From Podarcis melisellensis (Eukaryota), in the NCBI GenBank assembly GCA_964234715.1, contig OZ174277.1: a DNA stretch of 64,000 nucleotides, one strand, 5' to 3'. Within the stretch, counting starts at the first letter, position 1. The number at the start of each line of letters is the position of its first letter. The position numbers were made by a program, and so were the translations under genes. The notes beneath the pieces are model-generated. The model was not told the DNA's origin. It searched no databases and was given only the letters and a program-made list of their open reading frames with translations. Shown here in pieces: positions 16,859-23,080 of the stretch.

Positions 16859-16903
<45 letters not shown>
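16859..16903. repeat. (ATT)n microsatellite
   Basis: Direct reading. Confidence 0.95.
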
Positions 16904-16905
<2 letters not shown>

Positions 16906-17049
16906 GTTAGTGCACAGTTATGGACTTAAATTCCATTAGTTTCACTTAATTTCTTTAGATAGCACATTGCACCTGCCCCCTCCTCTCCCTAATGTTGCTA
17001 TAAAGATATGTTATACATATGGTTGTATTTCTTCTTTGAGTAAAATACT

Positions 17050-17458
17050 TGTCAGGGAACTGCCATCGGAGAGGCAGGAGGTGGAGGGGCTCTCAGAAGT
17101 CAGGAGAGACTCAGCAGCGGAGGAAGGCACCAGCAGGGGGAGAGTGGGGGATCAGAAAGAGAGAGAGACGGAGGAATGGCTCAGGGAGTCTTCCAGCGAT
17201 AACAGCGGAGAAGTTCCAGGTCCTCCCATAGGTACTCCCACCCCTCGCCGGAAACTGTCGCGCCGAGAGTCCAGACGACGCGTTTCCGTCAAGGAGCTTT
17301 TATGCTGGAGTAGATTCCGTAAACGACCACTGTCGGATTCTGCCAGCGACTGACGGAGCCATGCTCAAGGGGCTCCGTGAGAGACAGAGGTTTGCTGATT
17401 TTGCCAAAACTCTGAGGGACTAAGCTTTTACGCACAAGCAGCTCATTATCCCATCACA
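17050..17458 (+). repeat. 5' LTR (409 bp)
   Basis: Direct repeat of 22138-22546 with 4 substitutions seen by eye; TGTCA...TCACA termini. Confidence 0.97.
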
Positions 17459-17471: not shown

Positions 17472-17503
17472 CTTTGAAAGCAGCTTGTGCAAGGAGAGGC
17501 ATC

Positions 17504-18518
17504 ATGAGCAACCCAGCCAAAACCGGAGGAGCAGGAGCTGGAGCGGGTCCAAGCCTGGAAGAAAGGTACTGGGCGTTGGAGGTCAAGCTAGTGCTGCAAA
17601 CGGCGAGGCTTGAGGAGAGGAGGGCTCAGGATGCGGATAAGGGAAAAACCACCCCACTCGCAAGAAAGGTGCCAGGATTGGTGCAGAGGTTTGGGGGGGA
17701 TCCCAGGAACTATCAAGCCTTTAGAACAGAGATGCAATATGCCCTCAATCTGCAGTTTGATGACTTCCCCGATGAGGAGTCGAGAGTGGCGTTTGTGATT
17801 GGCCATCTCGAAGGGGGGGGCGAAAGACTGGGTTAGGCCCCTGATGGCAGCCAATAATGACATCCTAAAGGACTCAAGGAAGTTTTTTTGCGCCATGGAT
17901 CTGATGTTTTCCAGCAAGATTGAGCAGGGAGTGGTGCGCAGACAGTTAATGGCGTGTAAACAGGGGAGCCGATCTGTCCGTGAGTACTGGACTGAGTTCA
18001 CCATGCTGATTCATAGACTGGGTTGGGATCTATCGAGTGACCCCATACAAATGCTGTTCGAAGAAGGGCTCTCTTCGGCAGTGAAAGATGAACTTTCCCG
18101 GGCGCCTAGGGCGGAGTCTATGGACCAGCTGACTAAATCCGCGCTGACCATAGGAGCGCGCCAGGAGGCGAGAGCTTTGGAAAAGCGGGAAGGAAAGGGG
18201 GAACGTTGGAGGGATTTCCGCATTCCAGAGATTCCAGAGCAGCCTTTCCCACCAGCAGAGCCGATGGAACTTGGAACAGCGCGCGCGCGCGCAGTTTCAA
18301 ACCCCAGTGAAGGGAGGAAGAAGGAGGGAAAGAGTGCCAAGAAATGTTATCTCTGCCAACAGCCAGGTCACTTTGCCAGAGTCTGCCCGCAAAGAAAGGA
18401 ATGGCAAGGGATGGCGGGAGCTGTTGGGGGGAAAGAGGAAGAAGAAGTCAAGGAGCAAGTAAAAGCCAACGCCTGGCTGCCACCATCGGGGCACAGCAGC
18501 CAGGCCAAAGAGCAGTGA
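17504..18518 (+). CDS. gag: Gag (PEG10/sushi-like capsid plus CX2CX4HX4C knuckle), split by one extra G in the G8 run at 17813-17820
   Basis: ORFs 17474-17836 and 17799-18518 join as ...GHLEGGAKDWVRPL if one G is removed; CYLCQQPGHFARVC knuckle. Confidence 0.85.
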
Positions 18519-18526
18519 AAGTGCCC
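18458..18526 (+). promoter_or_regulatory. Putative -1 ribosomal frameshift signal (A GTA AAA, 6-nt spacer, H-type pseudoknot)
   Basis: Stem 1 GCCTGGCTGC (18471-18480) pairs with GCAGCCAGGC (18496-18505); loop GGGCAC pairs with GTGCCC (18521-18526); lies in the gag/pol overlap. Confidence 0.75.
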
Positions 18527-21500
18527 ACGCCGGAACCCCCAAGACCAGCGCTGGTGATAGAGGTGTTGCTAGAGCTGCCAAACGGACACCCACTAAAGAT
18601 AAAAGCGCTATTGGATTCAGGCAGCTCCTGTAATTTTATGAGTAAGGAGTTTGCAGCTGAGCACCAGATACAGACTATCCCTTTAAGTAACCCTTTGCAG
18701 GTGACCACGATTGATGGGAGGGAGCTGTTGGGAGGAGAAGTGAGCCAACAGACTGTCCCAATGATAATGAGGGTGGCAAGACACACCGAACTGATAGCGT
18801 TTAACGTGGCCACCTTGGGAGGAGCTCCCATTATTTTGGGGATGAGCTGGCTAGCGCTACATGATCCGCTAGTAGGCTGGCATCAGAGGGTGGTTTCCTT
18901 TGGATCAGCACATTGCCTAGAACACTGCAAAGAGGGAAAGGCTCAGGAAGGGGCCAGGGCCACTCTAGCAGGGACGGAAGTAACGGACAAGGGGAAGGTG
19001 CCACGACAATACGCTGACCTGATTGACGTCTTCAGTGAAAGAGAAGCAGACAAACTGCCCCCGCACAGACCTTTTGACTGTCAAATTAACTTATTCCCAG
19101 GAGCACAATTGCCAGTAGGCAAGCTGTATGCAATGTCAGACAGTGAAATGCAGGAGTTAAGGGAGTTCATTGACAAGAATCTCAAGCGAGGTTTCATCAG
19201 AGAGTCACGAGCGGTGGGGGGCAGCCCAGTGTTCTTTGTGGACAAAAAAAATACTAATAAACCCAGATTGGTCATGGACTTTCGGGCCCTAAATGCAGTG
19301 TCAGAACCAGTGACCTTCCCCATGCCCAGAATCGATGACATTTTGACCCGGGTGAGGAAAGGGAAAATCTTTACCAAGCTGGACCTTAGGGGTGCATATA
19401 ATCTGATACGTATGAGAAAGGGTGATGAGTGGAAAACCACTATGTTCACCCCCTTGGGGGCCTTTGAGTATCTCGTTATGCCCTTCGGTCTACAGGCGGG
19501 CTCGGCCTGTTTTCAATCGTTCATGAATCACGTATTGGGACCATTGCTTTACAAGAACTGCGTAGCGTTCTTAGATGACGTCCTGGTGTACTCGGAGAAT
19601 GAGGAGCAGCATGTACGAGATGTAAGAGAGGTACTGAGCAGATTGCAAGAAAACCAGCTGTGGGTGAAACTGGAGAAGTGTCAGTTTCATACCAGGGAGG
19701 TGGAATTCCTGGGGTACCGGTTGTCAGACAAGGGATTGGCCATGGATCCCAGCAAGGTTCAAGCGGTACTGGAATGGAAGACACCGAAAACTAAGAAGGA
19801 CGTGCAAAGATTCCTGGGCTTCGGAAACTTCTATCGGAAGTTCATCAAAAACTTTGCCCACTTAACGGCGCCCATCACTGATTGGCTTAGCAGCAAAAAG
19901 AAATTTGTCTGGACGGAAGAGGCGCAGCGAGCGTTCGAAAGATTAAAGAAGGCGTTTGCGTTGGAAGAGCAACTTCTGCACGTGGATCTACAGCAACCAA
20001 TGAGAGTGGAGACTGACACGTCAGACCGAGCGGTGGGGGCTGTGCTTCTACAGCCGGGAAAAGATACGTCGGAATGGAGACCGTGTGCTTTCTTCTCGCG
20101 GAAGTTGAACAAATCCGAGAGGAACTACACCGTATACGACCGAGAACTGCTCGCCATTCATGAAGCATTCTGGAGATGGCGACACTTGCTGATTGGGGCG
20201 CAGCACAAGGTCCAAGTGCGAACCGACCACAAAAATCTGGAATATTGGAGAACAGCCAGAGTACTGAACCAGAGACAAGTGAGATGGGCCCAGGAGTTCT
20301 CCAAATTCCATTTTGAAATTCATTACGTACCAGGCTCGGAGAACGTAAGGGCGGACGCTCTTTCCAGAAAACCTGAGTACTTAGAGGGGGAGGGAGCGCC
20401 TGAGGAAAGGCATATAATCCCTGAGGACCACTGGGTGTGTGGGGCGGCATTGGTGGGGCAGAGAGAACTGGTAGAGGGTACCGAGAACGATGAATACGCC
20501 CAAGAAAAACTCAGAGAACTCAGGGGGACAGGGGAGAACACAGGGGGGTTTGAAGAAAAGAATGGGGCATTGTATTACAAAGGGGCACTGTACATACCCG
20601 ATGGGGAACTGAGGGGCAGAGTACTCAAACAGTTACACGACAGCCCCACAGCAGGGCACTTCGGGCAGCACAAAACCATGTGGTTGGTTACCAGGGAGTT
20701 TTGGTGGCCCAAGGTGAGGGAAGACGTGAGGGAATATGTCAGGGGGTGCGACAGGTGTCAGCGAGCGAAAGGGGAGAGGCTGGCACCAGCTGGGCTATTG
20801 GAACCCTTACCCACACCAGAAAGGCCATGGGAGGCAGAATCCATAGATTTTATGACGGACCTGCCAAGATCCAAAGGGAAGACAGCCGTCATGGTGGTAG
20901 TAGACCTATTAACTAAGATGTGTCATTTTATAGCCTGTTCACACGCGGTCACAGCGGAAGAAACCGCCAAGTTGTTTGTAGAGCATATTTTCAGGTTGCA
21001 TGGCGCCCCCTTGAGGGTGGTCAGCGACAGAGGGAAACAATCTACTTCCAGGTTCTGGAGGAAGCTCATGAGCTTACTGCACGTGGAAGTCAATTTTTCC
21101 ACTGCCCGGCACCCAGAAACAAATGGGCAAGCGGAAAGGGCAAACGGGATTTTACAACAATACCTGAGGTGTTATGTAAGTGACAGAGAAAATGATTGGG
21201 TAGATAAGTTGGCTCTGGCAGAATTTGCCTACAACAACGCAGAGAATGTGTCCACAGGGATAAGTCCCTTCCTGGCGAATCATGGGTGTCATCCTAGGGC
21301 ATTTCCAGGAGAAGGAGGGGAGAGATGGAGTGTCCCGGCTGCGGAACACTTTGTTGAAGTGATGGAAGCGATCCACTGGCAACTCCAACTTAACTTGGAG
21401 AGGGCCAAGGAAGAATACAAGAAGCAAGCAGACAGAAGCAGAAGGGAAGGTGAAACCATAAGGGTGGGGGACCGGGTGTGGCTATCCACCCAAGGGTTGC

Positions 21501-22354
21501 CGTTCAAGGGTGGGTGTAAGAAATTGAGACCCAAGCGGCTGGGACCCTTTGAGGTCACACAACAGGTCAACCCAGTGGCATTCAAACTCAGATTGCCCAA
21601 TCACATGAAACTGCACCCAGTATTTCACAGGTCTCTGCTGTCGCCATACCGAGAGGGGCGAGAGTGGGGGGAACGTGAGAGGGAGGTTACTCAAACACTA
21701 GTCATAGAAGAAAGGGAACGCAACATGCATGTGGCAGGAATCATTGATTCCAGGTGGACAGGGAATCAGGTGGAGTATTTGGTAGAATGGGAAGGGGAAG
21801 CGGAGTCGGAAAACACATGGGTACCGGCAGAGGAGGTCAATGATGAGTTGTTAATAGAAACGTTTCATCAACGGTTTCCAAGGAAAGCTCAGCCCGTGGA
21901 ACGATTCAGGAGGGAACACTTCGGCACAACCGATGAGGAAGAGGAGTTTGCAGGGTTCCCAGAATCTGGGCTGGAAGAGGGAATAAACTCTGACGAGGAA
22001 GAGGACACAGGGAGACAGTGGAGAGAAGTGTTCGAATCCTCTGATGATGAGGAGTGTTCTTTCCGGGGTTTTCCATCCTCACCGCCAGCAGGGAAGGGGG
22101 CGGGAGAGGGGGGAGGGGGCCCTGGAGGGGAGGTGGATGTCAGGGAACTGCCATCGGAGAGGCAGGAGGTGGAGGGGCTCTCAGAAGTCAGGAGAGACTC
22201 AGCAGCGGAGGAAGGCACCAGCAGGGGGAGAGTGGGGGATCAGAAAGAGAGAGAGACGGAGGAATGGCTCAGGGAGTCTTCCAGCGATAACAGCGGAGAA
22301 GTTCCAGGTCCTCCCATAGGTACTCCCACCCCTCGCCGGAAACTGTCGCGCTGA
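18464..22354 (+). CDS. pol: Pol polyprotein (protease, RT, RNase H, integrase, GPF motif, chromodomain, acidic tail), in the -1 frame relative to gag
   Basis: LLDSGS; YLVMPFGL/FLDD; TDTS..TDHKNL; H..H..C..C with SIDF/SDRG/GQAER; RLGPF; YLVEWEG..ENTW; open frame 18344-22354. Confidence 0.95.
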   Translation, partial: SQRLAATIGAQQPGQRAVKVPTPEPPRPALVIEVLLELPNGHPLKIKALLDSGSSCNFMSKEFAAEHQIQTIPLSNPLQVTTIDGRELLGGEVSQQTVPMIMRVARHTELIAFNVATLGGAPIILGMSWLALHDPLVGWHQRVVSFGSAHCLEHCKEGKAQEGARATLAGTEVTDKGKVPRQYADLIDVFSEREADKLPPHRPFDCQINLFPGAQLPVGKLYAMSDSEMQELREFIDKNLKRGFIRESRAVGGSPVFFVDKKNTNKPRLVMDFRALNAVSEPVTFPMPRIDDILTRVRKGKIFTKLDLRGAYNLIRMRKGDEWKTTMFTPLGAFEYLVMPFGLQAGSACFQSFMNHVLGPLLYKNCVAFLDDVLVYSENEEQHVRDVREVLSRLQENQLWVKLEKCQFHTREVEFLGYRLSDKGLAMDPSKVQAVLEWKTPKTKKDVQRFLGFGNFYRKFIKNFAHLTAPITDWLSSKKKFVWTEEAQRAFERLKKAFALEEQLLHVDLQQPMRVETDTSDRAVGAVLLQPGKDTSEWRPCAFFSRKLNKSERNYTVYDRELLAIHEAFWRWRHLLIGAQHKVQVRTDHKNLEYWRTARVLNQRQVRWAQEFSKFHFEIHYVPGSENVRADALSRKPEYLEGEGAPEERHIIPEDHWVCGAALVGQRELVEGTENDEYAQEKLRELRGTGENTGGFEEKNGALYYKGALYIPDGELRGRVLKQLHDSPTAGHFGQHKTMWLVTREFWWPKVREDVREYVRGCDRCQRAKGERLAPAGLLEPLPTPERPWEAESIDFMTDLPRSKGKTAVMVVVDLLTKMCHFIACSHAVTAEETAKLFVEHIFRLHGAPLRVVSDRGKQSTSRFWRKLMSLLHVEVNFSTARHPETNGQAERANGILQQYLRCYVSDRENDWVDKLALAEFAYNNAENVSTGISPFLANHGCHPRAFPGEGGERWSVPAAEHFVEVMEAIHWQLQLNLERAKEEYKKQADRSRREGETIRVGDRVWLSTQGLPFKGGCKKLRPKRLGPFEVTQQVNPVAFKLRLPNHMKLHPVFHRSLLSPYREGREWGEREREVTQTLVIEERERNMHVAGIIDSRWTGNQVEYLVEWEGEAESENTWVPAEEVNDELLIETFHQRFPRKAQPVERFRREHFGTTDEEEEFAGFPESGLEEGINSDEEEDTGRQWREVFESSDDEECSFRGFPSSPPAGKGAGEGGGGPGGEVDVRELPSERQEVEGLSEVRRDSAAEEGTSRGRVGDQKERETEEWLRESSSDNSGEVPGPPIGTPTPRRKLSR

Positions 22355-22546
22355 GAGTCCAGCCGACGCGTTTCCGTCAAGGAGCTTTTATGCTGGAGTA
22401 GATTCCGTAAACGCCCACTGTTGGATTCTGCCAGCGACTGACGGAGCCATGCTCAAGGGGCTCCGTGAGAGACAGAGGTTTGCTGATTTTGCCAAAACTC
22501 TGAGGGACTAAGCTTTTACGCACAAGCAGCTCATTATCCCATCACA
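22138..22546 (+). repeat. 3' LTR (409 bp)
   Basis: Direct repeat of the 5' LTR; preceded by purine tract ggaggggaggtgga. Confidence 0.97.
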
Positions 22547-22565
22547 ATACTTGTGTTTTATTTCT

Positions 22566-23080
<515 letters not shown>

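Follow-up and report, generated by a model that had tools for sequence, protein, structure and literature searches.

Tandem FxGF motifs in the integrase tail of a lizard Ty3/Gypsy retrotransposon resemble host ligands of LEDGF and HRP2

Host ligands of TFIIS-type domains and known integrase tethers

Ligands of TFIIS N-terminal domains (TNDs) share an obligate short helix that anchors an F, V, L or I residue in one pocket of the domain. The helix is joined to an acidic linker, 8-16 residues long and composed largely of D/E, G and S/T, whose phosphorylation by CK2 raises affinity (PMC9987994). An FxGF motif that fills a second pocket is optional for TND ligands generally, but every LEDGF or HRP2 partner known so far carries one, and it is essential to their binding (PMC9987994). 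Several proteins have two or three such motifs; multi-motif proteins engage several TNDs, and single motifs discriminate between them (PMC9987994). The contact between FxGF and the LEDGF domain is conserved as far as Drosophila (JIL-1, JASPer; PMC6877644). Here we analyze a 64,000-nucleotide stretch of DNA from the lizard Podarcis melisellensis (contig OZ174277.1 of assembly GCA_964234715.1; "the window"), which contains a Ty3/Gypsy retrotransposon whose integrase tail carries two motifs of this design. An earlier reading of the letters, hereafter the original prediction, had proposed that these motifs may tether the intasome to LEDGF/HRP2 or elongation factors and so target transcribed gene bodies. 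The element and the apparent exon next to it lie on the + strand.

Lentiviral integrases contact the integrase-binding domain (IBD) through the folded dimer interface of the catalytic core together with the integrase N-terminal domain. Hijacking of the LEDGF/HRP2 domains by these viral integrases is described in a review (PMC9987994). The outcome proposed for the Gypsy element is the same as that achieved by lentiviral integrase with LEDGF/p75 and HRP2, namely an integrase linked to H3K36me-marked transcription units by way of one shared host domain. The proposed contact differs in that a linear motif, placed in a disordered tail, would copy the host ligands.

Two other retroviral systems are comparable. 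In the gammaretrovirus murine leukemia virus (MLV), the integrase C-terminal tail is reported to bind the ET domain of BET proteins (PMC4027182). In deltaretroviruses, an integrase LxxIxE motif is reported to bind PP2A-B56 (bioRxiv 10.64898/2026.05.01.722153). Both integrases likewise use a short peptide in or near a disordered C-terminus that mimics host ligands of a chromatin or regulatory protein and sets integration behavior. Both groups are exogenous viruses, and the motif class and host partner differ from those considered for the Ty3/Gypsy element. The principle is therefore established by the MLV and deltaretrovirus tail peptides, and the Gypsy instance would be new.

Integration-site choice by vertebrate long terminal repeat (LTR) retrotransposons is poorly understood. 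A 2023 study found that LTR elements of flies favor active, H3K36me3-marked genes, and it speculated on a role for LEDGF while noting that this idea has no data behind it (PMC10018349). In our literature searches, motifs of this type were not described for any retrotransposon integrase, in line with the remark in the original prediction that no description for Ty3/Gypsy elements was known. An integrase tail with a conserved motif of host-ligand type offers a concrete handle on this problem, in the form of a 20-residue peptide and a defined host domain.

Two conserved FxGF motifs in a chromoviral integrase tail

Translation of the 1336-residue Pol open reading frame (ORF; 18344-22354) yields both predicted motifs exactly where they had been placed. 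Motif 1 (RFRREHFGTTDEEEEFAGF, 21902-21958) comprises the anchor segment RFRREHF, with F1188 at 21905 and the anchor F1193 at 21920, followed by the 8-residue linker GTTDEEEE and the sequence FAGF (21947-21958). An acidic spacer of 20 residues (21959-22018) leads to motif 2 (WREVFESSDDEECSFRGF, 22019-22072), in which the anchor segment WREVF (anchor F1230 at 22031) precedes the 9-residue linker ESSDDEECS and the sequence FRGF (22061-22072). As read from the sequence, each linker holds two CK2 consensus sites of the form S/T-x-x-D/E, at threonines T1195 and T1196 in motif 1 and at serines S1232 and S1233 in motif 2. The motifs begin 10 residues past the Pfam Chromo match and lie upstream of the polypurine tract and the 3′ LTR.

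With acidic linkers of 8 and 9 residues and strict FxGF in both copies, these motifs agree in sequence with the published definition of TND ligands (PMC9987994). They resemble the cellular TND-interacting motifs (TIMs) and IBD-binding motifs (IBMs) of IWS1, JPO2/CDCA7L, KMT2A/MLL1, MED1, CDC7-ASK and DPF3a, and of Drosophila JIL-1, in their disordered location, hydrophobic anchor, acidic S/T linker with CK2 consensus and FxGF (PMC9987994, PMC6877644). JPO2 has two motifs in series, as does the integrase tail in the window (PMC9987994). A text search for part of the IWS1 motif given in the original prediction returned no match. Cellular TIMs and IBMs reside on host transcription regulators, whereas the motifs in the window belong to a retrotransposon integrase and are candidate ligands. 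Also unlike the cellular examples, motif 1 of the Gypsy family mostly has L or M in place of the first F of FxGF.

To estimate how often such motifs arise by chance, we derived a rule from the published definition: a hydrophobic anchor, a linker of 7-16 residues that includes four or more D/E but lacks K/R, and then FxGF. In 200,000 composition-preserving shuffles of the 70-residue tail, at least one match occurred in 0.65% of trials and at least two matches in 0.0045% (4.5e-5). The rule had no further match when all six frames of the 64-kb window were translated (128 k residues), and none in 104,663 residues from 166 non-family proteins, mostly chromoviral Pol fragments. These shuffle frequencies and the lack of matches in other proteins exclude a chance origin of the motif pair. 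The tail peptide had no match among PDB sequences at E values up to 10, and its best score in an ESM Atlas feature search was 0.78, under the useful range. A homologue search with the tail alone (residues 1181-1250) produced 235 candidates of which none was scored, an uninformative result that is probably an effect of low complexity. Inspection by eye led us to reject a reading of the motifs as canonical LC3-interacting regions, since the fourth position is F rather than L, I or V.

The nearest database proteins are Gypsy Pol sequences of the wall lizard, Podarcis muralis, which are 72-77% identical over the region. We aligned twenty of these, representing two 90% clusters and one singleton. 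The G-F of motif 1 is present in all twenty tails, with F, L or M at the first position. Motif 2 reads S-F-x-G-F in all of them, following W-R-x-[VML]-F and a linker of S/T and acidic residues. In this set the intervening spacer is variable and contains an 8-residue indel; between subfamilies, indels of 8-9 residues are seen. An exhaustive HMMER search with the SH3 domain, chromodomain and tail against 1.84 billion representatives returned 13,931 matches. Among the 148 best newly retrieved matches, an acidic stretch followed by hydrophobic-x-G-F occurs in family members only.

More distant relatives preserve the arrangement to differing degrees. One protein at 67% identity (P0046) has both motifs as strict FxGF, and two further Podarcis subfamilies (P0196 and P0197) show the same motif skeleton. 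A protein at 48% identity (P0047, lineage L003) has motif 2 only, in the form W-K-T-V-F, an acidic linker and FLGF. The skeleton recurs in a more distant family of the same clade, seen in three P. muralis proteins (P0051, P0195 and P0198), where the tail reads DDWLF, an S/T-rich non-acidic linker, FQGF, an acidic linker and LSGF; this arrangement may represent a version of the module that depends on phosphorylation. Down to 48% identity, all full-length tails that we examined retain the F-x-G-F of motif 2.

To quantify this pattern, we set eight key positions beforehand, the two anchor F residues and the F, G and F of the two F-x-G-F motifs, and scored them in ten subfamily representatives. 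Six of the eight are invariant, compared with 12 of the 55 other tail positions (Fisher one-sided p=0.005), and mean pairwise identity is 0.89 at key positions and 0.59 elsewhere in the tail. The two exceptions are the F/L/M site and a G that is changed to E in one copy. Both anchors, F1193 and F1230, are invariant, W1226 is conserved, and the TTD of the motif 1 linker is invariant in all ten representatives. Conservation of the motifs against flanking drift was a check that had been proposed with the original prediction, and it comes out in favor of the motifs, which are kept across diverged subfamilies while the spacer between them drifts with indels.

Codon comparisons indicate the level at which this constraint acts. 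The DNA compared comes from the window copy and from lineages L001/L002, L003 and L004, four lineages in all, and provides small data sets that are concordant. Between the window copy and L001, synonymous divergence (dS) across Pol is about 1.1, and the ratio of nonsynonymous to synonymous divergence (dN/dS) is 0.03-0.04 in the reverse transcriptase and integrase. The proportion of synonymous differences (pS) in the tail is 0.5-1.0. For motif 1, which is present in three of the lineages, the corresponding ratio of nonsynonymous to synonymous proportions (pN/pS) is 0.10-0.34. With all four lineages compared, pN/pS is 0.21-0.56 in motif 2 and 0.27-0.81 in the spacer. Within FxGF, the codons for F and G vary synonymously (TTC/TTT and GGT/GGG/GGA). 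Logan contigs from four species show that the family is highly repeated in each, and the best-supported variants in key codons are synonymous (21928, 22033 and 22069) or fall at x or linker positions (21951 and 22053). Constraint on the motifs acts on the protein, and we rejected constraint at the nucleotide level on the basis of the codons of these four lineages. The motifs are thus under protein-level selection.

AlphaFold2, run on an alignment of 26 sequences, models the SH3 domain and chromodomain with predicted local distance difference test (pLDDT) values of 84-90. From about Pol residue 1184 onward the chain is modeled as coil, devoid of secondary structure, at pLDDT values below 50, and the tail makes no contact with the folded SH3 and chromodomain. 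The integrase tail is therefore predicted to be intrinsically disordered, as would be expected of a region that houses linear motifs. The design that had been proposed for each motif is accordingly borne out in part: the F anchor, the acidic S/T linker with CK2-type sites and FxGF are all present, and the short helix does not appear in the model.

Loss of the chromodomain cage, clade and candidate host partner

A tree of 134 sequences was built from the integrase C-terminus and chromodomain, with the tail left out. All motif carriers fall in a single clade of nine rows, the ninth being a frameshifted fragment, with a Shimodaira-Hasegawa-like approximate likelihood ratio (SH-aLRT) support of 100. 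The motifs are thus a mark of a single, well-supported group of Podarcis-type squamate chromoviruses. In its sister elements, which come from Vipera and Rhineura, the tails are acidic and S/D/E-rich but lack FxGF, and a relaxed form of the motif pattern was found in 1 of 73 other tails of at least 40 residues. Three gene models annotated as host proteins (P0004, vomeronasal receptor-like; P0011, SLITRK6-like; P0021, GIMAP8-like) also include Gypsy integrase fragments. These chimeras are probably annotation artefacts of intronic insertions.

The same clade is distinguished by its chromodomain. Alignment to CBX5 places M, W and E at the Y, W and F positions of the aromatic cage in the window element, such that two of the three aromatics are gone. 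All three are intact in none of the nine clade rows and in 121 of the 125 other rows, including the Vipera and Rhineura sister elements, and in the distant proteins P0051, P0195 and P0198 every cage residue is replaced (N/R/T). The window element lacks the three-aromatic cage of a canonical (group I) methyl-lysine-reading chromodomain. It shares with chromoviruses such as MAGGY and Tf1-like elements the order protease, reverse transcriptase, RNase H, integrase and chromodomain, a 5-bp target-site duplication and TG...CA LTRs. It differs from them in that two of the three cage aromatics are missing, as part of a clade-wide cage loss, in that a tail of ~150 residues with FxGF comes after the chromodomain, and in that its reading frame extends into U3. 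Motif gain and cage loss fall on the same branch. As this amounts to a single event, the coincidence is suggestive and not a statistical proof.

The motifs are real and conserved, and plausibly a functional case of host mimicry. We propose that short linear motifs in the disordered integrase tail copy host TIMs and IBMs, and that the tail might dock onto the TND of the H3K36me2/3 readers LEDGF (PSIP1) and/or HRP2 (HDGFL2). Docking would tether the intasome to transcribed gene-body chromatin and so steer insertions there. The linear-motif tether would have replaced the usual reading of methyl-lysine by the chromodomain, whose cage is lost in exactly this clade. We put the probability of such a tether to H3K36-methylated, transcribed chromatin at roughly one half. 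Partner, phosphorylation and target-site effect are the elements that we infer: CK2 phosphorylation of the linkers would strengthen binding, and the presence of two motifs could give avidity or a choice of partner. A fuller evolutionary account, in which this squamate chromovirus clade gave up methyl-lysine reading by its chromodomain and acquired, then duplicated, a host LEDGF/HRP2 ligand motif, is the more tentative proposal, and we rate it somewhat below even odds.

If correct, this would be the first known case of a mobile element tethered for integration by a cellular-type IBM/TIM. It would also represent an independent and mechanistically different convergence with lentiviruses on one host domain, such that LEDGF tethering evolved twice, along different structural routes. 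The TND-TIM interaction network would extend to genomic parasites, and a switch in targeting, from a chromodomain cage that was lost to a linear motif that was gained, would have occurred within one retroelement lineage.

Several observations weigh against a LEDGF/HRP2 tether. Binding is a candidate interaction drawn from sequence resemblance, and acidic-aromatic disordered motifs are promiscuous. In most subfamilies motif 1 is F/L/M-x-G-F and not strict FxGF, and it is absent from P0047. No helix forms at the anchors in the AlphaFold2 model of the free tail, although helices may form only on binding. Tail-only sequence searches yielded no host protein bearing the motif. Cage loss and motif gain constitute one phylogenetic event with no independent replicates, and the proposed target preference draws on a single insertion.

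A less probable alternative is that the motifs are functional and selected and serve a partner other than a TND. Conservation and protein-level selection show function and not the partner, and the motifs sit in a long stretch of acidic, disordered tail. Candidates include chaperone-like acidic-aromatic binding of the histones H2A-H2B or H3-H4, a PH-domain or activator-binding surface of the transcription machinery, and a nuclear transport or trafficking factor. The tail could also act in cis as a phospho-regulated autoinhibitory segment on the basic integrase and nucleic-acid-binding surfaces of the element itself. The acidic tails of the Vipera and Rhineura sisters, which are devoid of FxGF, imply that the acidic tail in itself serves an older function. 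What is conserved, however, is the anchor F, the F-x-G-F and the fixed 8-9-residue acidic S/T linker, present twice, which is the signature of LEDGF/HRP2 ligands rather than a generic acidic patch. The autoinhibition variant also sits poorly with the AlphaFold2 model, in which the tail is not docked on the SH3 domain or the chromodomain.

We consider it improbable that the motifs bind a different TND, such as that of TFIIS, Elongin A, PPP1R10/PNUTS, MED26 or IWS1, and so couple the intasome to elongating polymerase instead of H3K36-methylated nucleosomes. TND ligands do share the helix and acidic-linker design, single motifs do discriminate among TNDs (PMC9987994), and the two motifs of the window differ in their anchors (RFRREHF and WREVF). 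Nonetheless, FxGF is optional for those domains and required by every known LEDGF/HRP2 partner (PMC9987994), and FxGF is the best-conserved part of the motifs in this family. Least probable is that the motifs have no protein-level function and reflect nucleic-acid constraint (proximity to the polypurine tract and U3, or RNA structure) or chance low-complexity resemblance: the stretch does lie close to the polypurine tract, 20-230 nt upstream, strong conservation extends to that tract and to the LTR-encoded part, and the tail-only protein search gave nothing, but this explanation is largely refuted by synonymous differences that approach saturation inside the motifs while nonsynonymous ones are few, by the synonymous variation of F and G codons, by the shuffle probability, and by the greater conservation of key positions over other tail positions.

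The element and its insertion site

A complete Ty3/Gypsy element encloses the motif-bearing tail. Its LTRs are 409 bp each, begin and end with TG...CA, and lie at 17050-17458 (5′) and 22138-22546 (3′); a blastn self-match shows them to be 99.0% identical, and the element is young. A 5-bp target-site duplication, ATACT, flanks it at 17045-17049 and 22547-22551. Pol matches the Pfam families RVP_2, RVT_1, RT_RNaseH, Integrase_H2C2, rve, SH3_Tf2-1 and Chromo, the last corresponding to residues 1130-1177 (21731-21874, E=2.7e-10). With protease, reverse transcriptase, RNase H and integrase, a chromodomain at the integrase C-terminus, LTRs and a target-site duplication, the element is a chromovirus of the Ty3/Gypsy group. 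A gag ORF piece with Retrotrans_gag and a CCHC knuckle occupies 17799-18518, and an upstream gag piece (17474-17836) overlaps it in a different frame. The gag gene thus looks split across two frames, which suggests either a frameshift of this copy or a programmed shift.

Beyond the motifs, the Pol frame traverses the polypurine tract (22090-22137), a purine-rich segment that abuts the 3′ LTR and is Gly/Glu-rich in this frame, and then continues through ~100 codons of U3 (22138-22441, equivalent to 17050-17353 in the 5′ LTR). The stop codon at 22352-22354 is unique to the 3′ LTR, with a sense codon at the equivalent place in the 5′ LTR, and it removes the last 29 codons of Pol. Relatives down to 48% identity, including P0047, run on to a conserved basic end with LLCW[KS]R. 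Part of U3 therefore appears to be protein-coding and under selection.

The one insertion seen is intronic and in sense orientation, ~330 nt upstream of an apparent exon. This exon, read from the sequence, spans 154 nt (22879-23032), is bounded as ag|G ... AAG|gt, and encodes a hydrophobic peptide. The original prediction had placed the element in an intron of PCNX2; an exon does appear to adjoin the element, and a search of the ESM Atlas with the exon peptide gave no usable match to support the name PCNX2. A long (ATT)n microsatellite is located at 16860-16905, ~150 nt 5′ of the 5′ LTR. The ATACT duplication of the element sits inside a tract rich in pyrimidines. Between this duplication and the apparent 3′ splice site lies another insertion, A-rich (about 22570-22857) and flanked by a duplicated target of its own, cttgtgttttatttct, and the distance from element to exon was ~25 nt before the A-rich insertion arrived.

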